64,000 nt of DNA, from contig JAANOX010000081.1 in NCBI GenBank assembly GCA_020184695.1, positions 1 to 64,000 of the forward strand, read 5' to 3'. The DNA comes from Histomonas meleagridis 2922-C6/04-290x (taxonomy: Eukaryota > Protista > Parabasalia). The stretch's first letter is position 1. Each line of letters opens with the position of its first letter. The notes under the pieces were generated by a model, which made no database searches, had not been told where the DNA came from, and worked only from the letters and a program-made list of their open reading frames with translations. This document shows positions 5,460 through 22,340 of this stretch, in pieces. The position numbers were made by a program, and so were the translations under genes.

Positions 5460-5650
5460 ATGACCATTGTGGTGCAGGTGAATTTGGGTCTGTTTTTGAC
5501 TAGTCATGGGCAGTTATCAAATTTTAGTTTAAATTCAATTGAAATTGTGGATTAAATTTTTTCCTAAACGTTCTCTACGAAGGTATATGCTGATTGGGAT
5601 GCTTTCATGATTGAAGATACCTCTAAAACGTTTATTTATGCAAACTACGA
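5460..5650 (+). pseudogene. Possible decayed protein kinase N-lobe fragment
   Basis: Translation gives CGAGEFGSVFD*SWAVIKF, resembling a GxGxFGxV glycine loop followed by a VAxK-like strand. Interrupted by stops. Confidence 0.25.
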
Positions 5651-5679
5651 AGATAAATGTCTTATTCTTAAAATCATTG

Positions 5680-5790
5680 AAATAAATAACATAGCACTAA
5701 TATCAATATTTCCTTGTTCAAGAAGTAATTTGGCTATTTCTGTATGACCATTTTCAGATGCTTCAAATAATATCATTATGATTTAATAAG
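5680..5790 (-). pseudogene. Isolated ankyrin repeat relic
   Basis: Minus strand reads ILFEASENGHTEIAKLLLEQGNIDISA, a typical ankyrin repeat, then degenerates into AT-rich insert-like sequence. Confidence 0.65.
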
Positions 5791-8126
5791 ATCGAAAAGT
5801 TTGGGACTTTTGATTTTTCTTATTAAAAGAATTGACAAAATTTATATATTAATTTTCATTGTTTTCGTAAAGTGCATGTTTCCTGTATTTATTGTTAAAA
5901 GTAATGGAATTTATGTGAAATCAAATATGGTTCATGCTTTTAGCACTTGCTCATTTCAGAGATCCTACCAAAAACGTTAATTTAAAGCGGTATCAATGTC
6001 TACAGCAATTTCAATCGTACTTCCAACCTTCATATGAGAGAATTCGACGTGGTCATTCCAGTCATTCAAATGCATGATTACTACAATAACCTGCGGCCTC
6101 AGAGCTCCCGAAGTCCAACTCATGAGGCAGCCATCAGTCACTGATGATATGATAGGCAAGAAAGCTCCTTAGGATTCTGCCTAAATTTGAAGGCTTGAAC
6201 ACAGCTGGAGGTCGTCAGATGATATTGTTTGTCTATGCTACATGACGTATTCCCAGTGATGGTGACGATGTTACTACAACCCATTGTGTTCACTGTGACC
6301 CAAATAAAAATGAGACCAAGAAACGCCATTTGAAACAATTGGATTCTATTTCTCGTGTATATGATGAGTGGTGATTTGCCCTATTGGCAAATATCTATCG
6401 AGTTCACAGATACTTCAAGGCAACTTAATGCGATTGATTGTGGTACCTATACCAGAAACCAGATACCGTTTGTTGCTGATTTAAATGGAGATTTCTAACA
6501 CTAAAGCGTTGAGAATTTTGCATTTGACTTCCAGAGTTGAGAAGATGCTTCTTGTGTGAATGACTTGAGTCAGAAATATAAATGATGCAAAAATGTTTTG
6601 TCTAGAAAAATTTTCATTTTTATTCTGTGCTATAGGAGTAGAAAACCAAAATTAGATTTGGAAAAATGAGGGAAAATAATGAAATCAAATTGATCCATTT
6701 TAAAAAAGAATCTGATATAATGTAAATATGAGGATTTTCCTCGAGTTAATATATTAGAAAAAGCCTTCAGGAATGGATCAAGATACAAACGAACTTGTCA
6801 CCCTCTCTGAAAAAGACCAAGAAAAAGCTCACCAAAAAATTATTTCATTCATGCAACTCACGGAATCACTAGAATCAATTGTCTTTAATCTCAACGAAAA
6901 TAATTTGGAAACATCAGTTCAAGTAACAATTAATTTCTTTGTAGATAGGATGACATATACATTTAACTATCTTGTTTCTAGACTTATCTATTCAGCTTTT
7001 GTTTCCCAAACAAATAATGAAAATATATATATTAAATACTTATTAACTTTAAAAGAAAAAGAAGATGAAAAAGATAAAAACAAAAGTGAAACTGAAGCTA
7101 ATCTTGTTCAAATCTTTTTGTAAATATTTACTGGGAATAGAAAAGCAAGAATCATATTTCCTTCTTGAAAAGATGATCGAACAAGAAATAATTGAACCAT
7201 CTTCAGTAAAGAACATGAATACATTATATTTTTCTCAATACAAAACAAAAAGAAGAAATAAACAAATTAATGAACAAATTTTTCAAGACCAAAACTCATT
7301 GGAGAATTCATCTCAGCACTTGATGAATTATCAAAAGATGATTAGGAAGCTTCATATGCAATATGTAAACGAAGGAGTTAATCCATTAGAAATTGCTAAA
7401 GTACTTCAAAATGATGATTTAGAAAAAGCTTCAAGAAATATCATCACATAATGAGTTTGACTTCAACCAAATAATTAGCCATCAATTTATGAAAGATGCT
7501 CATTTGTTAACAGTTTCATTAATTGATTATTGTGCATTTTATGATCTGATTAAATGTTTTAAATATTTGTTATTAAATAATTCGAATATCAAAAATACAT
7601 CTAAATATGCAATTGCAGGTGGAAACTTAGAAATTATTCATTTATGTGAACAAAACAATTCATCATTTACTGAAGCATATGAAACAGCTATAGAATTTCA
7701 TCGAAATGAAATTTTTCGTTATCTTTATGAAAATAAAATTGGAAAAATTTCCAATGACAGAAAAAATTCATCTTCAATGTTTTCTTTCCAAAATCCATCT
7801 TCAAACTCTTCTTTTACAAAACAGAATTCCAATATCGAAAGTCAAGATAATTGTAATTTAAGTGAAGAAAATTTAATATATCTTGGGAAAAAATGCATAG
7901 AATTTAATAATTATGAAATCTTCATGTTTTTAGAAAAAGAAGGAATGAAAATAAATAATAAAATTATAGAAGAAATAGCATCAAAAGGAAATGCATTCAT
8001 AATAGAAAGTGATATAGAAAGTCAACAAATTCCAAAAACAATTTTACCATATTCAGTTAAATCAGGAAATATAGAAATAGTAAGATTACTTTTTAGATAA
8101 AAGGAATTGATGTTAATTCAAAAACA

Positions 8127-8428
8127 ATTCATTTGAATAATTTTATATATGTTTTTAATAATTTGGATTATGCTTTAATAATTTGAAATATGTTTTAATA
8201 ATTTGGATTATGCTTTAATAATTTTTATATATGTTTTAATAATTTGAATTATGCTTTAATAATTTTATATATGTTTTAATAATTTGGATTATGCTTTAAT
8301 AATTTGAAATATGTTTTAATAATTTGGATTATGCTTTAATAATTTTATATATGTTTTAATAATTTGGATTATGCTTTAATAATTTTATATATGTTTTAAT
8401 AATTTGAAATATGTTTTAATAATTTGAA
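8127..8428 (+). other. Ankyrin-loop insert A (302 nt between SKT and TALH codons)
   Basis: Begins ATTCATTTGAATAAT after aaa aca and ends TTTTAATAATTTGAA before ACA GCA CTT. Composed of ~20-nt tandem units and contains stop codons. Confidence 0.8.
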
Positions 8429-8515
8429 ACAGCACTTCATATAGCAGTTAGATATAATAATATAGAAATAGTAAAATTACTTTTAGATAAAGGAATTGAT
8501 GTTAATGCAAAAAAT

Positions 8516-8615
8516 ATTCATTTGAATAATTTGTAATATGTTTTAATAATTTTTAATATGTTTTAATAATTTGAAATATGTTTTAATAATTTGAAATATG
8601 TTTTAATAATTTGAA
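8516..8615 (+). other. Ankyrin-loop insert B (100 nt between AKN and TALH codons)
   Basis: Same 5' ATTCATTTGAATAAT and 3' TTTTAATAATTTGAA ends. In-frame TAA TAA immediately before FETAL. Confidence 0.8.
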
Positions 8616-8707
8616 ACAGCACTTCATATAGCAGTTAGATATAATAATATAGAAATAGTAAAATTTACTTTTTAGATAAAGAAGGAATTGATATTAATGC
8701 AAAAACT

Positions 8708-8891
8708 ATTCATTTGAATAATTTAAAATATGTTTTAATAATTTGGATTATGTTTTAATAATTTGGATTATGTTTTAATAATTTATAATATGTTTTAATA
8801 ATTTTATATATGTATTAATAATTTGGAATATGTTTTAATAATTTAGAATATGTTTTTAATAAATTTTAGAAATATGTTTTAATAATTTGAA
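8708..8891 (+). other. Ankyrin-loop insert C (184 nt between AKT and TALH codons)
   Basis: Same conserved ends and 20-nt units as inserts A and B. Confidence 0.8.
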
Positions 8892-9300
8892 ACAGCACTT
8901 CATATAGCAGTTAGAAATAACAATATAGAAATAGTAAAATTACTTATTGATAAAGAAAGAATTGATGTTAATGCAATAAGTATTCATTTGAATAATATAT
9001 AATATGACTTTTAGATAAAGGAATTGATGTTAATGCAAAAAATATTCATTTGAATAATTTAGAATATGTTTTAACAATATTTGACTGCAATACAAATTTC
9101 ACAGCAAAAAGGTTATACAGAAATAGTAAATTTACTTCTTAAAAAATTATAATTCAGCGTCTTCTTCTACAAACATCAAATCTTCATTTTCAATAAAAAA
9201 TGGAAATGAAGCATGTTTTGATATAAAATTTACCAAAATAAAGAAGAATTTTTTGATAATAATTAGTGGTCTTAAAGAGTGTTACTGAAGATTTAACACA

Positions 9301-9549
9301 ATTGGTTCACCAGTATTTTTAACAGGTAATGTTTATGCTTTAACAAATGAAGGTAAATATATTACAAATACAACATCAACTGATTGTATTCCATCAGTTA
9401 AAACTACAGGTACTTATAAAGAATATCTAGGTATTTTTGTATCTAAAAATAAAACAGGTTATAAAGCTAATTCCAACATATTATCGTATTACCAACTTGG
9501 TTATGCGTTTAGTATTTGTTATATTGTTAACATTAATAATAATAGATAA
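9301..9549 (+). pseudogene. ATG-less coding fragment, possibly from a Maverick/Polinton-associated gene
   Basis: 82 open codons, IGSPVFLTGNVY...TDCIPSVKTTGTYKEYLGIFV, with almost all third positions A/T. From memory it resembles a highly repeated Trichomonas hypothetical protein family; not verified. Confidence 0.35.
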
Positions 9550-9819
9550 CGTAATGTTTTGTGGTTGATCTTCAGCTATAGTATTTAATGTATTAAGTAA
9601 TACAGATGTAACTAAACGATTTGGGAATGTATGTTGACAAGTGCAAAAGGGCGCAAATTAACTTTCACAAAAAACAATTCAAGAAAATATTTCAAGAATA
9701 AATTTGAATTTAAAAAACGGTTTCATGGATAAAACTTTTGCTGTTAATTTTTCCACACGAGACTAAAGGAACATTATGACTGAGAAACACTTCTATCAAT
9801 AAATCAAGCAATTTTTATT

Positions 9820-11061
9820 TTGAATGAAGAAAATTTCTCTGCATCTTTAAGTTTAATAATCAACAAATTTGATGAAATCCATCCTTTATCTTATGATTTA
9901 ATTATTATTCAAATGATATATTATTCCTTTGCAATTAAAAATAAAAATGTAGATTTATTTTTGAATATTATAAAAGAAATAAGAACATTTGAAGAGAGTA
10001 ATAAAATCAAATCTAATATATTTAATATATTTGGACGATTTCTTAATGATAAACATACACATGAATCATATTATCTTCTTGAACCAAACATTGTAAAAAA
10101 CAATCAGAGTTCTTATTTTGTACATTATATGTCTAAAGAAGAATTAGCATTTAAGGAAATATTATTTATGATTTTGTAAATTATGAAGAACTTTCAAAGA
10201 AAGTTGGGAATTACATAAGAAATTAATTAGAGAAGGACATAATCCAAATGAAATTTCGAAAATAATTCGAAATTATGAAATAGAAAAATTTCAACATATC
10301 ATCACAAAATGATTTTGATTTTAATCAAACAATTGCACCATCACTTTATGAAAGATGTTCATTTATTCAATATAATGTGACATTAACTGATTATGCAGCA
10401 TTTTTTTCTTCTGTTAAATGTTTTAAATATTTACTTATGAATGGCGCATAAGTAAAGAATACAGTTAAATATGCAATTTCTGGTGGAAATGAAGAAAATC
10501 ATTCATCATTTGAAGATGCATATGAAACTGCAATTAGATTCCATTGAAATGATATCTTTCATTATTTTTATGATAATAAATTAATAAAAATAAATAATCT
10601 AGAAGAATTAGGAAAGCTTTGTATTTTATATCATAATTATGAAATATTTTCATTTTTACTTAAAGAAGGAATGAAAATCAATGATGATATTATTAATGAA
10701 GCAGCAAATATTTTTTTCTTAAAGAGCATTCAATTCCGCATGATATATTGATATTTTCAGCTGGATCAGGAAACATCGAACTTGTTGAATACGTTTTAAA
10801 ACAAAAAGGAATTGACATTAATGCTAAAGATATTTATTTGTTTTATTTGATATTTATTTTAATAAGATGATATTTCAAAATAATATTTGGAAATTATTTA
10901 AATTATTTAATACAGCACTTATGGATGCATCTGAAAAAGGCTATACAGAAATAGTTAAATTACTTCTTGAAAAAGAAGGAATTGATATTAATGCTAAAGA
11001 TATTCATTTATTTTATTTAAAAATTTATTTTTATTATATTTACCTTCAAAATAATGGATAA
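9820..11061 (+). pseudogene. DUF3447-type ankyrin-repeat gene copy 2 (multiple frameshifts)
   Basis: Fragments TDYAAFFSSVKCFKYLLMN, KYAISGGNEE and FEDAYETAIRFH, plus ankyrin FNTALMDASEKGYTEIVKLLLEKEGIDINAKD. Confidence 0.75.
10832..10911 (+). other. Ankyrin-loop insert E (80 nt between AKD and TALM codons, non-repetitive)
   Basis: Starts ATTTATTTG after aaa gat and ends AAATTATTTAAT before ACA GCA CTT. The upstream frame hits TGA and the downstream frame is shifted. Confidence 0.75.
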
Positions 11062-11433
11062 ATTACACAACCTGTAAATCATCAATAAAATTTTTGATTT
11101 TTTTTTAGATCTTTATCATCACATGAATAAAAATTTGCTTTCAAATTGAGGAAAAAATATACAGATCATAATGGAAATTTCGAAATCAATTTTTTTAAAA
11201 AATATATTTTTGGAGACCAATATTAATTATCATGAAAGATTAAAAAATAAAAACTTATTGGTACAAGAACCTTGATTACATTCTCCTTTCTTCTCTTATT
11301 GAGAATACAAATGCAGGAACACATACCCTACCCATTATGCTACACCAATGGTCAGATGATTTTATGGTGTGTTGTCTTATGACTTCGTTCACAATGAAAA
11401 GACGAACGTTAAATGTAACAAAAGTGTCAATAA

Positions 11434-14400
11434 ATGAACCTAAAATCAAGAAGAAGAAGCTCATTTCAATCTCAAGATACTTCTGATCCTATTTATGAAA
11501 TATTCAGCTCAATAAAGGACCTTCAAGGTGCAGTTCAAGATTCGTCTTTAGATTCTGATGATTCATATTTTAACCAAATTCCAAAAATTACTGCAGAGCA
11601 ATTCTTTAGTTTTGATCCTGAAAATTTCCAATGGTTTTTTAACTACAGGAGTAATAGTCCTAGAATAATTTTAAACTTATTAGATTTTTATGAACGAAAA
11701 CCTGTTCAAATTTCTGGTGCCCTTGTTATATTATATGAAGCTACTTCTTTTTTGCTTTCTGATAATGAACATGATGAAAAAGATCTTATCAATATCATAA
11801 AAGCATTAACATTATGTCTTACAATTCCAGAGAAACAATCGCTTACTACCTATATTTTCTCAGAGATTGTTAAAAAAGAGACCAAGATCCGATTTTTCTC
11901 AGATGAGTTACTTGAACATATATGGGATCACATCAAGCTCAACAAAACCATCCAATTTGATGACTTCCATGAATCCTTTAAGTCAATCATTGAATTTACC
12001 TTATCTAAGAAAGATGAACATTTAAATCAATTAATGTTAGAAACCTTTTTATTATGTTATAATGAGAATCGCGACATAATTCAAAAGTTTCAAATATCGG
12101 AATTTCCATTTCTACAATATTTTCTTTATGAATTTGATCCCACAGCTCTAAAATTATTTCGAATCTTTTCCAATTCTAAGACACGAAATGAACAATTTGT
12201 TAAAGACACATATTCAGAATTTCCACAACATATAACAGAACACATAAAGAAGTTAAACAAATTCGAAATATTTGATACAAATATTGAAGAAGAATATTCG
12301 AATTCATTTCCTATTCAATTTTCTAATAACAAAAGTATGTTTATAAAGAAAACACATAATTCATTTGAAAATGGAATTGGATATTATCCGGACATGTTAT
12401 ATGAAATCAACGAACCAATTTCCAATAAATATAATAATTTTTTGGAAACATTAAAAGAATTTTTATGTAAGTCAAATCCCGAAAACATTCGAATTTTTAT
12501 AAAAGAATTTTCGAATGTATTAAAAAATGATTTTAATTATGATATATTTTCAGTGTATTTAACTATTATCGGTATGACTAATGTTAATAATATTATACAA
12601 GAAGAAATAGATACTATTAAACGACCAGAGTTTTTTAAGCCAACAAATACCATTTTTTATGAGAAATCAATGAACAAATTAATACATAATTTTCGTAATG
12701 AAATATTAAACTTATTTGTAAAAAAAGATTATGAAAATATATTGATACAACCTCGAACACAAACATCACTTTTATTAACAGAATATATTTGTCGAATATC
12801 ATTAATGAAAGATTTCTCATTTGATAAAATCGATATTAATACTAAACGAACAATTTGTGAGTTATCAATACAATTACAAAATTATGATGTTAACTTTCAT
12901 AGCGAAGAATTAATTAAAGCACGAAACGCATTGTTTTTATTTATCTTTAAAATGTTACAAAGTGATTTCATTAATACACTTGATGTAGGATTATTTTATC
13001 AATTTATATATGAAGAAGAAATTACTGATAAAATATTATATATCATTTCGAAATGTTATGTTAATTGTCAAGTTCAAAAAACAGATTTTTTACCATTTAT
13101 TAAATATTTTAATCAAGTATTAATTGATTGTGATGAGAAACAATCGAATCCGAATAATACAATATTATTATATAAAATAACTAAATTAATTATAAACATA
13201 ATACAACAAAATTTGGAATTAGTTGATAAGTTACAAGAAATAATACAATTATTATTTCATATTCATGAAAATATTTCTACAAATGAAATATTTGATTTAA
13301 TGTTTGATTTATTATTATGTTGTTCTAATGTTAATAAGAATTTTATACCACCATTACCATTTACAATGAATATGATTAATTTCTTAAGGAATAATGATAA
13401 AAATAATAAAGTTATTTTATTAATAATGATGTTAATTACTAATTCGAATCAATATTCATTAAATAAAAATCAAATTTATTTAATAGAAAGACCACAATTT
13501 TTAATATATTTGTTATTATATTTAAATGATAATAATGAATGTAAAAAAGAATTTTTAAAGTTAATGAAATTCTCATTAATATCTGTTTATAATTTATATC
13601 AATTATATACTGCTAAAATTGATCAAATCTTATTAAAGTTTTTAAGTTATAATGAAGAAATTAAAAGTTTTAATTTTAATGGTTATGATTTATATCTTAA
13701 TTTTACATATGAAGAACAAAAACTTTATATTATTCCATTATTAATTGAAATGAATAAATTATTTTCATCATATTCATTTGTATATAATTCGATTATATAT
13801 TCTAAAGATAATATAAATATAATTAATATGTTTAATAACTTGATTAAAAATAATGAAGAAAATTATTTTATTTCTACATATCCAACATATACATCGATTA
13901 TAGGTATTACACATGAATTTTTTAATTCACAAGATTTCATTATTACTTTTGACTTTAATATTGATACATATTTATTCCAATTAACTAAAAGTCAAATTAA
14001 TATATTAACTATTAATGATTCTAAAAAGAATTCGATACAATTTTATTTATTATATCCACATTTATATTTTAAAATAGAAAATAATTTCCATTTCGAAAAA
14101 AGTATAATGAATGTATTTGATGAAATAGAACGTAAAATTAATGATTCTTCAAATATAACTATAAAAAATAAATATCAAAAGTTTTGGAATCAATTATTTT
14201 TATGTTATAATACTAAAGAACAACGTTTTACTATTAAAGTTAATAATATTAATCGATTAGAAATAAAAATTAATAAGAAATTTAATTTCTCATCTAAAGA
14301 TGATTTACAAATACAAATTAGTAATTCAACATTACCTACGAATTCATTTATATGTGGAATCATAAAAAATATTCGATTTAAATCAACAGAAATTAAAAGT

Positions 14401-17400
14401 TTTCAACAAAATAATAATTTATTTGAATACACAAAACCTTTTATTAAATGGTTTAATAATATTAAATTAGTGAATAAATATTTAAATTCATTATTAATTA
14501 ATATGAATTTAGAATATTTATCATTATTAAAACAAATTTTCGAGAAAAATGAATTAATTCAAGAATTATTTACTGAAGAAATGTGTAATAAACTTTTAAT
14601 CTTTGTTGAGAAATTAGAAAAATATTCAACAGAAGTATATTTCATATTATATTCCATATATTTAACTATAAATAATAAAGAATTAAAGAAGTTTTTCTTT
14701 GAGAATTTAATATTTAATTTCGATTTATTAACTAAATGTGATAGTCCTAATATAATATTTAATCATTGGAATACAACGATGTTAATAACATCACAAAAGA
14801 TAATAAAGAAAAAGTCATATTTTAAGTCATTTTTATTATTTTTACAAAACAATTATTTAATATTTAATAATTCACATGAAGTTATACAAAACATTTTAGT
14901 TCAATTATCATATTATAAGTTTAATGAAGATGATTCCAAAATATTATTTAAATCATTATTAACATCGAAGACAGATGAATTGTTTATCTTTTATTTACAA
15001 ATCATTATACAATTATCATTAGCTAAACATAAAATATTATTTAAGAAATATATACCAGAAATACGAAAACAATTCACCGAAATGGTAAACTTAAATAAAA
15101 TTAATATTTTAACATTATTAATTCCGACAATATTAGTATTATCACAACCAGATTCATTTAAAGATTCATTAGTATTCTCGAATTATTTTAATAATAAAAT
15201 GGATTTAAACCCATTTTTATTTAAAGCTTTAATCTCACAAATCGAAGAATATACAGATTTGTTTCCAATATGTTGTAACTTAGCATTATATGAAGAAGAT
15301 CCTAAAAATATATCATTTGATAATAATTGGAATATTACATTTTTATCCGAATTAACTCAAAATGAACATTGGTATATATGGCCAATATTATTATTATTAT
15401 ATATTGATAATGATAAAAAACCTTTATTAATATATATAATGATTGGCTTCATTAATAAAATGAAAAATCCTTTCGAACAAGTTCAAGATATTATATATTT
15501 ATTATTATTTTTATCGGAATATTCTAAAAATAAAACAAATGAATTAGATTTATTATTCGAAGCATTAATTAAAAATGAAATATTTTTCTCAAATTATTTC
15601 GAGAAATTATTAACATTAATATTAATAACTCATATATTCCAATTAACTTGTCCAATATTTAATCATAATGTCGAATTAATTAATAGTTATAAGTCATCAA
15701 TATTTAATCAATTTTCACCTGAAATTGATTTTTCGACTTTTACTTTATTACCAGAATTTGAGAAAAATCAAATTCGAAATATTAATGACTTAAAACTATT
15801 TTGTAAACATGTAAAAGATTTAATACAAGAAAACAAAATTCGTTTTGTCTTTCATTTTAATATAACAAATTCTTTATATAAATTAATACAACAATTAGAT
15901 ATACCACAAAATTATCAATATTTACAACTTTTTAACATGTTGTTTAAAAAAGAAAAGATTAATAATAAAGATAAAACATTTTTCGAAATGATTGAAAACT
16001 TACAAAAAGATTTTACAAAGAATTTTATTAATTTCATTAAAGATAAATTCGAATATATCTCTAAGAATATTGATGAAGCAACAAAAATGAATTATAAAAC
16101 TAAATCATTAAACTCAACTGATAATTTATTCTTAGAGAAAAATGAAGAAATACAATTAGTTAAACCTAAAATCAATGAAATGAATAAAGATAATAATAAG
16201 GTTGAAATTCGGAGTTCGATTTTTATTCATAATTATCCATTTTTATTAGAAGAAATTAAACAAAAGAATATCAATGAAATGAAATTAAAAGATATTCCTA
16301 ATAATTCTAATTGTGTCTTAAAGATATTTGATCATTCGATTAAATGTATTTTTAAAATCGAAAGTTCATTATTCATAATTGAAACATTAAATAATAAAAT
16401 TATTGTTAACTTTAATGATATCATTATTATATATAAAAAATCAAAATATTCACTTGAAATATTTACTAAAACACAAAAATGTTATTATTTAAATTTCTCA
16501 ACTAATAATAAAAATTATTCACGTATTATATCAAAATTCCCCGAAAATTTATTTGGGAAAATACATTCTTTTTATTCTAATTTCGATTTCATATTACATT
16601 TGAATTATTTAAATGATAAAACTTTTAATGATTTTACACAATATCCAATTTTCCCAAATATTATATCATTAGAGAATGAAAACAATTTAACAATTAAAGT
16701 TAGTAATAATAATTCTAAAAGTACAATATTAACATATTCATTTTGGAACTTACCAATCAACAAAATACCTCAAAATAATATAACTCAATTAATGCGTAAT
16801 AATCAATTATTATCACCTGAATTTTATACATTACCCGAATTATTTAATACTTCAATATTACCAAATTGGGCACAAAATGATTCATTTTATTTCGTATATA
16901 CATTACGTAAAATTTTGGAATCACCAAATATCACTGAATCATTATTAATATGGATCGAACAAACTTGGGGTAATAACACATCGAAATATTTACAAAAAGA
17001 AATTAAACAAATATCACAAGAATTTAATTATAAAATCCCAAATAATATTAAACTATTAAATGGATATTGTTCAGATAATATAATTTGGTATATTAATGAA
17101 ATCGGAAAAATTATATTTCAGCCGATTTTAATTAATGAAAATAATATTTGTTTGTATGAAAAGCCTCAAGAATATCAAATAGATATTAATGAAATTAATA
17201 ATAACATTAAATTTAATAATGATTCATTTGTTGTATATAATTCACAAAGTTTTTCATTTTCGATTTTCTCGAAATTGAATCGAAATTTGATTTCGAATAT
17301 TTTAATGTATAATAAAAATTTGTTTTGTCATTATGATGATGATGAAATATTTTATTCACCTGAATCAAGTTTAATTATGTCGACAAAAAGTAATAAAATT

Positions 17401-17919
17401 ATTTATTGTAAATCCGCAATTTCTTCATTTAACGTAAGTAAACAATTCCAACGAATTGTGATCTCAACAATTGACGGATTATTACACATATATAATATTA
17501 ATGAAATGAAATTAATTAAAACAATTAATATATATGACGTGGCACAAAAAATCATTGTGACTGACGGATTCGGATTAATTGTTGTTCTTTTGTACCGGAA
17601 AATTCTCGTGATCTCTCCAAACGGTAACAAAATTAGAGAAGTGATCACAACAGCAAATTATACATTCATGAAATCTTTCACTATTAAAGGAATCGACTTC
17701 ATTGGATATATCGATAACAACACTGACGTTGGAATGTTCGAAGCTTTTGACCCAAATAATATATGTTACACATGCGCACAAAATGGGGCATTGTCATTAC
17801 ACTACGCACAGGAAAGAAATTGCTTGGTAATATTAACAATTTCAGGCTTAGTTAAGGTGAAAAAATTGGACATGGGAAGGCTGTTTAAAGTTTTGGATGA
17901 ATCGAATATGTATCAATAA
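11434..17919 (+). CDS. Large BEACH (beige)-like domain protein with degenerate WD40 C-terminus
   Basis: 2161-aa ORF. SNFDFILHLNYLNDKTFNDFTQYPIFP, LSPEFYTLPELF and LPNWA...LRKILES...WIEQTWG match BEACH motifs. A beta-strand-rich WD-like tail follows. Confidence 0.8.
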   Translation: MNLKSRRRSSFQSQDTSDPIYEIFSSIKDLQGAVQDSSLDSDDSYFNQIPKITAEQFFSFDPENFQWFFNYRSNSPRIILNLLDFYERKPVQISGALVILYEATSFLLSDNEHDEKDLINIIKALTLCLTIPEKQSLTTYIFSEIVKKETKIRFFSDELLEHIWDHIKLNKTIQFDDFHESFKSIIEFTLSKKDEHLNQLMLETFLLCYNENRDIIQKFQISEFPFLQYFLYEFDPTALKLFRIFSNSKTRNEQFVKDTYSEFPQHITEHIKKLNKFEIFDTNIEEEYSNSFPIQFSNNKSMFIKKTHNSFENGIGYYPDMLYEINEPISNKYNNFLETLKEFLCKSNPENIRIFIKEFSNVLKNDFNYDIFSVYLTIIGMTNVNNIIQEEIDTIKRPEFFKPTNTIFYEKSMNKLIHNFRNEILNLFVKKDYENILIQPRTQTSLLLTEYICRISLMKDFSFDKIDINTKRTICELSIQLQNYDVNFHSEELIKARNALFLFIFKMLQSDFINTLDVGLFYQFIYEEEITDKILYIISKCYVNCQVQKTDFLPFIKYFNQVLIDCDEKQSNPNNTILLYKITKLIINIIQQNLELVDKLQEIIQLLFHIHENISTNEIFDLMFDLLLCCSNVNKNFIPPLPFTMNMINFLRNNDKNNKVILLIMMLITNSNQYSLNKNQIYLIERPQFLIYLLLYLNDNNECKKEFLKLMKFSLISVYNLYQLYTAKIDQILLKFLSYNEEIKSFNFNGYDLYLNFTYEEQKLYIIPLLIEMNKLFSSYSFVYNSIIYSKDNINIINMFNNLIKNNEENYFISTYPTYTSIIGITHEFFNSQDFIITFDFNIDTYLFQLTKSQINILTINDSKKNSIQFYLLYPHLYFKIENNFHFEKSIMNVFDEIERKINDSSNITIKNKYQKFWNQLFLCYNTKEQRFTIKVNNINRLEIKINKKFNFSSKDDLQIQISNSTLPTNSFICGIIKNIRFKSTEIKSFQQNNNLFEYTKPFIKWFNNIKLVNKYLNSLLINMNLEYLSLLKQIFEKNELIQELFTEEMCNKLLIFVEKLEKYSTEVYFILYSIYLTINNKELKKFFFENLIFNFDLLTKCDSPNIIFNHWNTTMLITSQKIIKKKSYFKSFLLFLQNNYLIFNNSHEVIQNILVQLSYYKFNEDDSKILFKSLLTSKTDELFIFYLQIIIQLSLAKHKILFKKYIPEIRKQFTEMVNLNKINILTLLIPTILVLSQPDSFKDSLVFSNYFNNKMDLNPFLFKALISQIEEYTDLFPICCNLALYEEDPKNISFDNNWNITFLSELTQNEHWYIWPILLLLYIDNDKKPLLIYIMIGFINKMKNPFEQVQDIIYLLLFLSEYSKNKTNELDLLFEALIKNEIFFSNYFEKLLTLILITHIFQLTCPIFNHNVELINSYKSSIFNQFSPEIDFSTFTLLPEFEKNQIRNINDLKLFCKHVKDLIQENKIRFVFHFNITNSLYKLIQQLDIPQNYQYLQLFNMLFKKEKINNKDKTFFEMIENLQKDFTKNFINFIKDKFEYISKNIDEATKMNYKTKSLNSTDNLFLEKNEEIQLVKPKINEMNKDNNKVEIRSSIFIHNYPFLLEEIKQKNINEMKLKDIPNNSNCVLKIFDHSIKCIFKIESSLFIIETLNNKIIVNFNDIIIIYKKSKYSLEIFTKTQKCYYLNFSTNNKNYSRIISKFPENLFGKIHSFYSNFDFILHLNYLNDKTFNDFTQYPIFPNIISLENENNLTIKVSNNNSKSTILTYSFWNLPINKIPQNNITQLMRNNQLLSPEFYTLPELFNTSILPNWAQNDSFYFVYTLRKILESPNITESLLIWIEQTWGNNTSKYLQKEIKQISQEFNYKIPNNIKLLNGYCSDNIIWYINEIGKIIFQPILINENNICLYEKPQEYQIDINEINNNIKFNNDSFVVYNSQSFSFSIFSKLNRNLISNILMYNKNLFCHYDDDEIFYSPESSLIMSTKSNKIIYCKSAISSFNVSKQFQRIVISTIDGLLHIYNINEMKLIKTINIYDVAQKIIVTDGFGLIVVLLYRKILVISPNGNKIREVITTANYTFMKSFTIKGIDFIGYIDNNTDVGMFEAFDPNNICYTCAQNGALSLHYAQERNCLVILTISGLVKVKKLDMGRLFKVLDESNMYQ

Positions 17920-18460: not shown

Positions 18461-19279
18461 ATGGTCTTAAAGTTAGCAGAATTCCCCGAATCAAAGCAAA
18501 TACCATATTTCTTCATTTACTGCTTCATTGCAAACCTAAGAACAAATGAGTTGATCGATAAAGCATTTGATTATGCATATAAAAAATATTGGATTTTCTA
18601 TGACCAACTTATTGAATCGGGCGATAATATTATTCATTCTCTTTGTAAACACTTTGGAACAGAAAGGATGTCGGACAGCGAATATGTTATACGTGAAAAG
18701 AAATTAGGTTATCCAGTTATTTATTCACCCGATTTTTATTACACGATTTATGATCCAACAGTTGGAATTGCAGACAACTTTCTAATAACTAACGAAAAGA
18801 ACTTTCTAATAACTAACGAAAAGAACTTTTTAATAACTAATAACGAAAAGAACTTTCTAATAACTAATAACGAAAAGAACTTTCTAATAACTAATAACGA
18901 AAAGAACTTTCTAATAACTAATGACGATGATTCTTATTATATCAAGAGAGATCGTAAAAATTTCCATGAATATACCACAGTAGGAAAATCAACAGAATTT
19001 TCCACAGCACTTGAAAAGTTGGGAGAAAAGCTTGGCGTTTACATTGATCCCAATGTAAATTATGAATTCAAACCAATTCCAAAATGTAATTATGGAAGAG
19101 CAGGAAATATTGTTTACACAGCTTACTACAGTTCAAATGCACATCGTGCTGGAATTTGTCATCATAAGTATGGTGATGAAGAATGCATTTTAGCGGATCA
19201 AGTTTCTGGAGGTCAATGGCATATTGTATACATCGAAGATCCATCAATGAGCGATGGTTATTACCCATACTGCGCTTAA
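18461..19279 (+). CDS. Hypothetical protein with internal NFLIT(N)NEK tandem repeat
   Basis: 272-aa ATG-to-TAA ORF with a promoter-like motif upstream. No family recognised. Confidence 0.7.
   Translation: MVLKLAEFPESKQIPYFFIYCFIANLRTNELIDKAFDYAYKKYWIFYDQLIESGDNIIHSLCKHFGTERMSDSEYVIREKKLGYPVIYSPDFYYTIYDPTVGIADNFLITNEKNFLITNEKNFLITNNEKNFLITNNEKNFLITNNEKNFLITNDDDSYYIKRDRKNFHEYTTVGKSTEFSTALEKLGEKLGVYIDPNVNYEFKPIPKCNYGRAGNIVYTAYYSSNAHRAGICHHKYGDEECILADQVSGGQWHIVYIEDPSMSDGYYPYCA
18776..18921 (+). repeat. In-frame coding tandem repeat, 21/24-nt units
   Basis: Six near-identical AACTTTCTAATAACT units separated by (AAT)AACGAAAAG. Confidence 0.95.
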
Positions 19280-20639: not shown

Positions 20640-20830
20640 TATTTTATAAGTGCTGTTCGTCATAATTTTATTATATTCCAAATCTTTTATTTTGAAAATT
20701 GATATTAATTTCATCTTTTTTCAAGAAACATTTTGATGATTTCAGCACCACAATTTTCAGCTGCAAGCATGAATGCTATTTCAAAGAATTTGAACAATTT
20801 TTAGATAAAATTTTTTTAATTTAATTAAAT
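20640..20830 (-). pseudogene. Ankyrin repeat relic preceded by an insert-like 3' end
   Basis: Minus strand AATTGTTCAAATTCTTTGAA|ATAGCATTCATG gives FEIAFMLAAEN-GAEIIKMFLEK.EININ. The upstream AT-rich stretch resembles the end of insert E. Confidence 0.55.
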
Positions 20831-21188: not shown

Positions 21189-22340
21189 ATGATGACCAAT
21201 GTGACTAATATCATAAACACAGTAGATAAAAATTTGAATAATTTACCAACCTGCTTGAAATTCCTAATTGAGCTTGAGAAAAATATATTCAGTTTAACAG
21301 AAGAAAACTTCCAGCCGTCCGTAAAAAAAATATTGGAATTATTCGATTCAAATTATCCCTGTACATTTAATACTATTATAAGTAACATCGTTTATAATGC
21401 ATTTTCATCACAAAAACATGAATTTGATATTTACTTAAATTTTTTAAAAGCACTTCAAACTAAAGAAGAAGAAATTAATAAAAATATCTTTCAACTAATA
21501 TCAATTTTTATCAAACGTATATCTACATTCAGCACACAAGAATCATATTATTTAATCGAGAAACTAATTGAACAAAATTTGGTTGATAAAAGTATTACCA
21601 AAAATATTCATTCAAAATATTTTGCTCATTATAAAACAGAAGAAGAAAACCCAAACCAAAAAAAATTTTTATTTGGATCTAATGGAAATGATCCAAAAGT
21701 AAAATACTTTTTGGATAATTATGAAGAACCATCAAAGAATGATTGGGAACTTCATAAGAAATATATTCAAGAAGGAGCTAATCCAAATGAAATTGCGAAA
21801 ATAATTCGATCTGATGAAATGTAGAAAATACAGGTAAGTATGCAGTTGCAGGTGGAAATGTAGAAATCATTCATTTGTGTGAACAAAATCATTCTTTATT
21901 TGATAAAGCATATGAAACAGCAATAGAATTTCATCAAAATGATATCTTTAAATATATTTATGATAATAAATTAGAAAAAATACAATCAAAGCCAAAAATG
22001 TCTAAAGTCACACATTATTTGGTCGATCTTTGTATTCAAAAAGATAATTATGATATTTTAGCATTTTTGGAAGAAAAAGGAATTGATATTAATGCTTGTA
22101 ATATAAATGAATCAGCAATAAATGGAAATTTATATCTTGTTAAATGTTTCCTTCAAAATAATCAGATTCCAAAAAATATTTTGCCATTTGCTTCAAAATC
22201 AGGAAATGTTGAACTTGTGAAATATATTTTAGATAAAGAAGGAATTTTATATATTTTTTAATAATTTGGAATATGTTTTAATAATTTTATATATGTTTTA
22301 ATATTTTGAAACAGCACTTCAAATTGCAAGTAAATATGAA
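21189..22340 (+). pseudogene. DUF3447-type ankyrin-repeat gene copy 3 (internal deletion, stop)
   Basis: ORFs 21189-21824 and 21875-22261 parallel copy 1 (QESYYLIEKL, EGANPNEIAKII, AYETAIEFHQND, ILPFASKSGNVELVKY). They are followed by 20-nt units and FETALQIAS. Confidence 0.75.

Follow-up and report, generated by a model that had tools for sequence, protein, structure and literature searches.

Several kinds of sequence are known that interrupt a coding region without ordinary intron borders. The non-canonical introns of Fritillaria and Oikopleura and the nonconventional introns of euglenids lie in coding sequence without GT-AG borders, are numerous and are thought to be derived from repeats. 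Bypass elements, as in T4 gene 60 and the byps of Magnusiomyces mitochondria, need matching take-off and landing codons and usually structure. The type B spliceosomal introns of the parabasalids Trichomonas vaginalis and T. stableri are 23-28 nucleotides (nt) long with the 5' motif GTWYWD; introns number at most one per gene in T. vaginalis and at most two in T. stableri, and are reported also in genes for ankyrin and other repeat proteins (PMC12316389). The stretch analysed here, called the window, comprises 64,000 nt of Histomonas meleagridis 2922-C6/04-290x (contig JAANOX010000081.1, positions 1 to 64,000), in which loops of ankyrin repeats are interrupted by inserts built from a 17-nt spacer and a single codon. 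The evolution of the isolated codons is that of ankyrin loop codons, and the 90-nt exons between the inserts have evolved like ankyrin helices. The best explanation, to which the sequence comparisons lend about an even chance, is that the loop codons are still decoded and the spacers removed precisely, likeliest by excision at the RNA level.

Structure of the inserts

The initial annotation described four inserts in the loops of ankyrin repeats, and all four are placed as it had claimed: 8127-8428 (302 nt), 8516-8615 (100 nt), 8708-8891 (184 nt) and 10832-10911 (80 nt). Each is bordered by an AK(N/T/D) codon on the 5' side and by ACA GCA CTT on the 3' side, starts with ATT(C/T)ATTTG and finishes with TTT followed by GAA or AAT. 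None of the four lengths is divisible by 3 and every insert holds stops in every frame. The partial copies were also found, at 8982 to about 9008, 9044-9083, 11002-11061, 22247-22310 and, on the minus strand, 20660-20676. The 9-mer ATT[CT]ATTTG alone is not rare in the AT-rich window (21 matches vs about 12 expected); the signal is its association with the ends of ankyrin exons, the 20-nt periodicity and the recurrence in other genomes.

Each insert is a tandem array of 20-nt modules, and each module consists of a T-rich spacer of 17 nt (RTTT...ATTT) and one codon. The basic form of 80 nt holds four degenerate copies of the module, with the spacers (sp) at four consecutive phase-0 codon junctions of the ankyrin beta-hairpin loop, in the order N-A-K-D-sp-x-sp-x-sp-G-sp-x-T-A-L. 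The four single codons spell the canonical ankyrin xxGx loop between KD and TAL. Cutting the inserts as 17+3+17+3+17+3+17+3 and translating the four triplets gives loops such as NDGC, HEGR, YDGK, KSGK and NHGK, and DDGN for positions 10832-10911 of the window. Autocorrelation in the inserts peaks at lags 20 and 40 (0.49 vs a background of about 0.38).

The conserved columns of the module are R at position 1 and TTT at positions 2-4 and 15-17, and the three columns from one TTT to the next R are variable and rich in A and G. The spacer consensus is R-TTT-w-TT-y-AAA-TT-A-TTT, with 59% T and 29% A on the coding strand. The statistics of slots and spacers cover 26 loops from H. meleagridis, gut-metagenome relatives and this window, corresponding to 104 codon slots. 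Of the 104 spacers, 42 begin with GT, another 42 with AT and 20 with some other dinucleotide; 82 end in TT and none in AG. An in-phase stop is found in about 31% of the spacers, which excludes that they are read through.

Two descriptions in the initial annotation have to be revised on this basis. The two insert types that it distinguished, repeat-rich and unique, are one element with differing copy number of the 20-nt module. Tandem Repeats Finder (TRF) gives periods of 20, 40 and 60 with 36.7 copies over 8132-8889, and arrays of 2, 3, 4, 5, 9 and 15 units occur within the window. The repeat-rich inserts of the first of the window genes, gene A, parse as 5, about 9 and about 15 copies and are thus minisatellite expansions of the common module. 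The single insert at one fixed position is in turn replaced by separate 17-nt spacers (four, or 1, 2, 3, 5, 9 or 15), each following one loop codon. Spacer 3 of 10832-10911 is identical in two relatives (L010 and L005), though the exons of the three loci differ.

Two other parses of the inserts were rejected. A coding 3' half, read in the frame of the downstream exon (FQNNIWKLFKLF), looked conserved in five loci, but with all loci included stops appear at codon -3 and the 3-periodicity is only weak; this reading was dropped and the module model adopted. A single -1 frameshift, or two +1 shifts at the stops, is ruled out by the stop maps, in which the upstream frame of several inserts is closed early and the downstream frame still has stops late in the insert.

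Coding constraint on slots and exons

No stop codon is found in the 104 slots, compared with 5.6-6.5 expected from column shuffles (P 5e-5 to 1e-4), and the register one base upstream of the slots holds 47 stops. The third slot encodes Gly in 21 of the 26 loops with synonymous variation (GGA in 16, GGT in 4 and GGG in 1), and the slot residues, N/K, D/N, G and N/K/R/W, match those of ordinary ankyrin loops. A second H. meleagridis gene, held out from the analysis, has the slots NLGQ, KSDQ, KIDS and NNGK and 16 spacers of exactly 17 nt.

At least 25 downstream ankyrin exons of 30 codons are open. Between 25 repeat units the pairwise p-distance rises from 0.25 at the second codon position through 0.42 at the first to 0.50 at the third, and this order, with divergence highest at position 3 and lowest at position 2, shows constraint on the exons at the protein level. 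The inserts overall lack the codon-position periodicity of the exons. Upstream, more than 20 relatives have an intact N-terminal open reading frame (ORF) of 260-506 amino acids (aa), and dN/dS between family members is 0.24-0.57. The claim that the inserts are a systematic, conserved feature of ankyrin genes otherwise functional-looking in related organisms thus stands. Since the readability of the single codons has been preserved by selection, the spacers are probably removed.

The divergence also bears on the other option of the initial annotation, by which ankyrin loops were colonised by a small DNA element, site-specific and mobile or self-copying, that is either tolerated there or kills its hosts. 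The same structural site is used in many repeats and genera, only some loops carry an insert in the Tritrichomonas foetus and Tritrichomonas musculus genes, and the module of gene A has multiplied locally. The spacers are, however, as diverged as the host repeats (p-distance 0.42), and they are T-rich on the coding strand only, so that there are no inverted termini. No target duplication is evident, and the copies always lie in the orientation of the gene. With 17 nt the unit is moreover far below the size of any known element, and this origin is considered improbable. One-strand composition and gene-following orientation likewise set the spacers apart from miniature inverted-repeat transposable elements and other DNA transposons, a comparison made without running an inverted-repeat tool.

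Length variants

Variants in the length of the inserts are consistent with a discrete 17-nt unit. Inserts of 63 nt are short of exactly one spacer, the first in L005 and Hm13008 and the fourth in Hm15400, where its absence leaves GGT AAG ACA, that is G-K-T. A class of 26 nt consists of 9 nt and one spacer; minus 17 nt it reads K-G-K-I/V-R-N-A-L and matches a spacer-free paralogous loop, L-R-K-V-R-N-S-L. In the five variants of 83 nt one slot holds two codons, which accounts for the extra 3 nt, and all spacers have the usual 17 nt. Throughout the length variants parsed, gains of 3 nt fall in slots and spacer losses are exact 17-nt units.

These variants are left unexplained if each loop instead holds one larger non-canonical intron, the whole insert or all but a few terminal codons being removed in one step and the internal triplets being conserved as splicing signals and not as codons. 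The avoidance of stops in the slots, the synonymous third bases of the Gly codons and the ankyrin-like slot residues would also remain without explanation, and there are no boundary dinucleotides in common. The junction suggested in the initial annotation, which keeps ATT CAT/TAT plus TTT GAA/AAT, places a stop codon second after D in many intact relatives (GAT ATT TAA); the retained codons lie instead at 20-nt spacing, as in KD-DDGN-TAL for 10832-10911. The larger intron is accordingly thought improbable, even though excision from the start of the first spacer to the end of the last would also preserve the frame and the T. musculus inserts (53-85 nt, all with GTTT starts) look like single units, with one insert of 26 nt being GT...AG.

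The feature in related parabasalids

Protein searches with the N-terminal ORF found members of the family in ENA gut-type metagenome assemblies as well as in H. meleagridis, T. foetus and T. musculus. Of the closest members, at least 20 stop within a few codons after the first DINAKD, for example with KDI, KDILLFLSKFHSII or NEKYIYFFSLEFF as the last residues before the stop. The truncations after DINAKDIYLF that the initial annotation had mentioned for predicted parabasalid ankyrin proteins are thus real, these homologues ending directly behind the first NAKD. Among the truncated members are H. meleagridis proteins annotated as caskin, T. foetus TRFO_21112 and one T. musculus protein. Further 30-codon ankyrin exons follow the stop in the metagenome contigs L001, L007, L011 and L004 and in the H. 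meleagridis loci L003 and L013. The exons past the stop are all open, and each is shifted by +2 in frame relative to the preceding exon. The spacing of exon starts is exactly 170 nt (90 + 80) in L001 and L007, with one exception in L011, and this layout is kept in several species at about 75% nucleotide identity.

In L013 (7001-10614) the 506-aa caskin annotated at NCBI ends at the first loop and a separate gene of 505 aa is annotated downstream. The start codon of this second gene, an ATG, falls within the last spacer. Its product opens with MFK-TALMWASDEEHNEIVK, half an ankyrin repeat, and continues into a long tail rich in Ser, Thr and Pro; the 505-codon ORF is reached past four arrays. Most simply, the locus would be read as a single gene, split by annotation at the spacer arrays, that encodes an N-terminal domain followed by five ankyrin repeats and a C-terminal tail.

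Interrupted ankyrin loops occur across these tritrichomonad genera. In T. musculus (L014:4471-4974) inserts of 53, 85, 55 and 26 nt are found at the same loop, all starting with GTTT, and the insert of 26 nt is GT...AG. The exons are open and their frames differ according to the length of the insert; one loop has its residues K-N-G-V uninterrupted. In T. foetus TRFO_21112 (L012:4001-6560) an in-frame insert of 87 nt is read through in the annotation, further inserts truncate the model, and two more ankyrin exons lie past the annotated stop. The annotated proteins of L012 and L014 thus read through or stop in loop inserts while ankyrin exons continue beyond; the remaining loops of the Tritrichomonas genes have the ordinary form. 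Of the loci examined, only those of Histomonas and relatives show the strict 17+3 module. A scan of JGI metagenomes gave one distant locus.

The main rival explanation is that the ankyrin tails are dead. Translation would then end in the first loop and yield the N-terminal DUF3447 part alone, and the downstream exons and slot codons would be remnants, in slow decay, of an ancestral array put out of frame by a 20-nt minisatellite. Every database protein does end at the first loop, the copies in the window are plainly decayed, one H. meleagridis gene has a spacer of 18 nt, and there is no known mechanism of removal for spacers that are confined to the DUF3447-ankyrin family. Decay is nevertheless difficult to reconcile with at least 25 diverged exons that are open and conserved in the order position 2 > 1 > 3, with slots that are free of stops (P about 1e-4) and keep Gly through synonymous changes, and with indels of 3 nt in slots and losses of spacers as exact 17-nt units in the variants parsed. 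The 505-codon ORF beyond the arrays of L013 and the common layout in several species at about 75% identity are further arguments against it, and dead tails are judged unlikely.

Two other observations were made at these loci. A Tc1/mariner-like transposon with terminal inverted repeats of about 28 nt (GGGGGGTGGAAAAGTACC...) lies at L003:11211-12480 (H. meleagridis WSYJ01000186.1); its transposase ORF is decayed, and it splits a DUF3447-ankyrin paralogue whose annotated 421-aa product, P0030, ends inside the element. An ORF of 299 aa with a DDE_Tnp_IS1595 domain is found on the minus strand 2.3 kb downstream of the ankyrin gene in L007 (4380-5279) and L008 (4622-5521), which are independent metagenome contigs with 99.96% identity.

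Comparison with known introns and recoded genes

The type B introns are alike in being found in parabasalids, very short and T-rich, and the spacer 5' ends that start with G (GTTTAT, GTTTTT) fit GTWYWD. The spacers differ in having 17 nt and not at least 23, which is 6 nt below the shortest known Trichomonas intron, and in starting with A as often as with G. They end in TTT and not AACAG, have no CTAAC branch motif (the TCTAAC...AACAG element), and stand in arrays one codon apart, with 4-15 per loop and tens per gene. Because the 3' element is missing, the length is too small, many starts are A and the spacing is one codon, the spacers are not filed as spliceosomal introns.

Parabasalid U2-type introns were defined by a 5' GT (GYAYGY/GTWYWD), a 3' AG after a fused (A/T)CTAAC and a length of at least 23 nt. 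The ends of the spacers, TT in 82 of 104 and never AG, do not agree with this, nor does the unit of 17 nt, which is fixed by the 20-nt period together with the 17-nt presence/absence variants. A scan for intron motifs of the T. vaginalis style gave matches inside coding sequence only. A U12-type AT-AC intron would have ATATCC at the 5' end, the branch TCCTTAAC and a 3' AC, compared with the spacer consensus ATTTAT...ATTT. Enumeration of every GT-AG and AT-AC pair within +/-15 nt of the borders of 27 homologous inserts of 80 or 83 nt confirmed that no such rule restores the frame: a frame-restoring GT-AG is absent in 20 of the 27, and the AT-AC solutions have no position common among them. GT-AG and AT-AC were discarded as splicing rules for want of a consistent solution.

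The introns of Fritillaria, Oikopleura and euglenids resemble the spacers in being numerous non-GT-AG interruptions of coding sequence; they are, however, tens to thousands of nt long and lie between ordinary exons, and we know of nothing like one-codon exons in these organisms. Euglenid introns pair their two ends, whereas RNAalifold gave no pairs in the 27 inserts with flanks. A search of Rfam 15 with positions 6500-11500 of the window gave no match at E <= 1.

Bypass elements are alike in being short non-coding gaps with stops and of constrained length inside an ORF, and differ in the matching codons and the structure, neither of which is present here. Translational recoding, in which ribosomes would skip every 17-nt spacer in the manner of T4 gene 60 or of the byp elements of yeast mitochondria, would account for stops within coding gaps and for a spacer length as strictly conserved as in bypass gaps. 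Take-off and landing codons do not match: the slots are RAW or GGA (GAT, AAT and GGA-like codons), compared with TTT for the triplet before the next slot. With no conserved structure, and with four hops per repeat over 5-20 repeats leaving almost no full-length product, recoding appears very improbable.

Programmed DNA elimination from an expressed copy of the genome, like that of the internal eliminated sequences of ciliates, would suit short, AT-rich, precisely bounded segments that interrupt coding sequence. Parabasalids have, however, no known split of germline and soma, the spacers are present in bulk-cell genome and metagenome assemblies, and their boundaries are neither TA nor TTAA; such elimination is extremely improbable. 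Excision at TTAA of the piggyBac kind was rejected because 20 nt would remain, out of frame.

Coding minisatellites and introns born by tandem duplication are similar in having a unit, here of 20 nt, that changes in copy number (4, 5, 9 and 15 in one window). The arrays agree with the definition of a minisatellite, a unit of 10-100 nt repeated head to tail in varying number. The unit is in this case not a multiple of 3, yet the gene flanks are under coding constraint, and 3 of the 20 nt of the module behave as coding.

Removal of the spacers

Continued decoding of the loop codons would require that every 17-nt spacer be removed with precision. Excision at the RNA level, with the spacers taken out one by one, would be the most likely route, and the process probably matches no known intron type. 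The origin of the spacers may lie in the short type B introns of parabasalids, from which they would be extreme derivatives that have lost the CTAAC...AG signal at the 3' end. After removal, a module of 20 nt in the DNA would contribute 3 nt to the message and would thus be frame-neutral, so that minisatellite-like expansion and contraction would change only the length of the loop. The arrays of 5, 9 and 15 modules in gene A resemble such an expansion.

More tentatively, tritrichomonad parabasalids may have a hitherto unknown class of 17-nt intervening sequences with RT...TT ends that are excised precisely even between exons of a single codon. The 20-nt minisatellite would then be a frame-neutral device by which target-binding ankyrin loops gain and lose residues singly. 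This would call for either a spliceosome with radically relaxed rules for the 3' site and for size, or a new excision-ligation activity.

A number of points weigh against removal of the spacers. We infer it from conservation only, and to our knowledge no machinery removes 17-nt segments without a 3' AG or AC. Exons of 3 nt between adjacent tiny introns look sterically awkward for a spliceosome. Spacers of 17 nt were not found outside ankyrin loops, neither in about 25 other genes of the window nor in the neighbouring genes within L003; the scan for spacers splitting other ORFs gave two chance-like matches inside long intact ORFs. The confinement to ankyrin loops fits a co-amplified family feature better than a general class of introns. 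The inserts of T. foetus and T. musculus lack a clean 17+3 module, and the spacer of 18 nt in one H. meleagridis gene breaks the 17-nt rule, although it may be a defect or a homopolymer error of the assembly. A path-finding test with skip lengths of 11-26 nt did not single out 17 as the sole workable length; the test is too permissive in T-rich sequence and was left out as evidence. Annotators have called these proteins truncated, and a protein search with the C-terminal ORF of L013 for a transcript-derived product spanning the loops found nothing.

As a whole the interpretation in the initial annotation is partly supported. Removal by an unrecognised mechanism is the part that stands as the best inference, the inserts being unreadable and following no GT-AG or AT-AC rule; the insert as a single block and the junction derived from it fail.

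If excised, the spacers would be among the shortest intervening sequences known, the first class without any canonical 3' dinucleotide and the first to leave arrays of one-codon exons, and the view of what an RNA-processing machine can recognise would change. The feature was not found described in the literature searched. Annotation is affected at once in H. meleagridis, T. foetus and T. musculus: because the genes are annotated as truncated or split in two, the ankyrin repertoire of these veterinary and gut parasites is under-called. Through a frame-neutral minisatellite, protein-binding loops could vary rapidly. Without excision of the spacers there would still be a large conserved gene family truncated at one codon, with a pattern of downstream constraint that is unexplained.

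Genes A, B and C of the window

The window is AT-rich (GC content 0.18-0.35) with dense long intronless ORFs, and the Pfam matches are to DUF3447-ankyrin genes and to leucine-rich repeat genes of the BspA type, a gene content indicative of a parabasalid. The feature is carried by three paralogous DUF3447-ankyrin genes, A, B and C, in which DUF3447 (PF11929) is followed by ankyrin repeats (Ank matches). The copies in the window are about 76% identical in DNA to H. meleagridis paralogues. The features are as follows.

6773-9152, plus strand: gene A, DUF3447-ankyrin pseudogene (Pfam DUF3447/Ank, ORF list, exon indels)
8127-8428, plus strand: gene A loop array 1, about 15 modules (TRF periods 20/40/60, module parse)
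8429-8515, plus strand: ankyrin exon TALHIAVRYNNIEIVKLLLDKGIDVNAKN, 29 codons, open
8516-8615, plus strand: gene A loop array 2, exactly 5 modules (module parse)
8616-8707, plus strand: ankyrin exon copy, frame broken by homopolymer indels
8708-8891, plus strand: gene A loop array 3, about 9 modules, some spacers of 18-20 nt (decayed; module parse)
8892-9043, plus strand: ankyrin exon, truncated spacer from 8982, and internal deletion fusing into the tail of the next exon (...LLDKGIDVNAKN)
9044-9083, plus strand: two modules (slots AGA, TTG) ahead of the last exon (module parse)
9084-9152, plus strand: last ankyrin exon TAIQISQQKGYTEIVNLLLKKL and stop codon
9820-11061, plus strand: gene B, paralogous pseudogene (sequence, ORF list)
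10832-10911, plus strand: canonical 80-nt array, 4 x (17-nt spacer + codon), slots GAT GAT GGA AAT
10912-11061, plus strand: ankyrin exon TALMDASEKGYTEIVKLLLEKEGIDINAKD, then decayed array from 11002 with the third slot now TAA
20639-20779, minus strand: decayed ankyrin fragment, one 17-nt spacer (20660-20676) between ...RFG and R-TAL
21189-22340, plus strand: gene C, third paralogous pseudogene
22247-22310, plus strand: gene C array, 4-nt remnant and three modules (slots GGA, TAT, GAA) directly before TALQIAS

Genes A, B and C are pseudogenes with independent frameshifts, stops and deletions, and the copies that the initial annotation had taken for live genes are mute on the tolerance and function of the inserts; evidence of tolerance comes from the relatives only. 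Nor are all the ankyrin codons between the inserts of gene A clean, as had been described. Indels of 1 nt are present in the exon copies of this gene at about 8080-8126 and at 8616-8707, and the N-terminal parts of genes A, B and C have frameshifts, a deletion and in-frame TAA or TGA.

The N-terminal region of gene A is spread over three frames (ORFs 6773-7123, 7065-7451 and 7489-8100) and is followed by the ankyrin repeats with spacer-array loops; the gene has 78% nucleotide identity to an intact relative (L009). The slots of array 1 are mostly GGA, GAA and TAT, and the total is 302 and not 300 nt because several spacers have 18-19 nt. Array 2 has the slots GTA TTA GAA GAA GAA, giving KN-VLEEE-TAL with no slot stop.

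Gene B has in-frame stops at 10449-10451 (TAA) and 10545-10547 (TGA). The TGA corresponds to CGA in gene A and relatives, a C-to-T change, and the TAA is presumed to be derived from CAA. In addition the frame is broken near 10180, and the DUF3447 region has an internal deletion. In gene C a TAG is found at 21822-21824, part of the DUF3447 region and the NAKD end of the first ankyrin exon are deleted, and the ankyrin part is truncated.

Sequencing error is an unlikely cause of these defects, given that long ORFs elsewhere in the window, where the DNA is just as AT-rich, are intact. An uninterrupted ORF of 2161 aa lies at 11434-17919 in DNA of 18-25% GC, which indicates that the assembly is reliable in homopolymer-rich sequence. 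The stop region of gene B and the part from 8 to 10 kb are the most AT-rich ankyrin DNA of the window (GC 0.20-0.25).

A lone ankyrin helix pair (ILFEASENGHTEIAKLLLEQGNIDISA) is found at 5645-5776 on the minus strand, followed by a spacer-like 17-mer (5676-5692) and GAT, and no recognisable gene surrounds this fragment. Elsewhere in the window, a 27-nt tandem repeat (18776-18927, 5.9 copies, 95% matches) lies inside an ORF at 18461-19279 that has no Pfam match.

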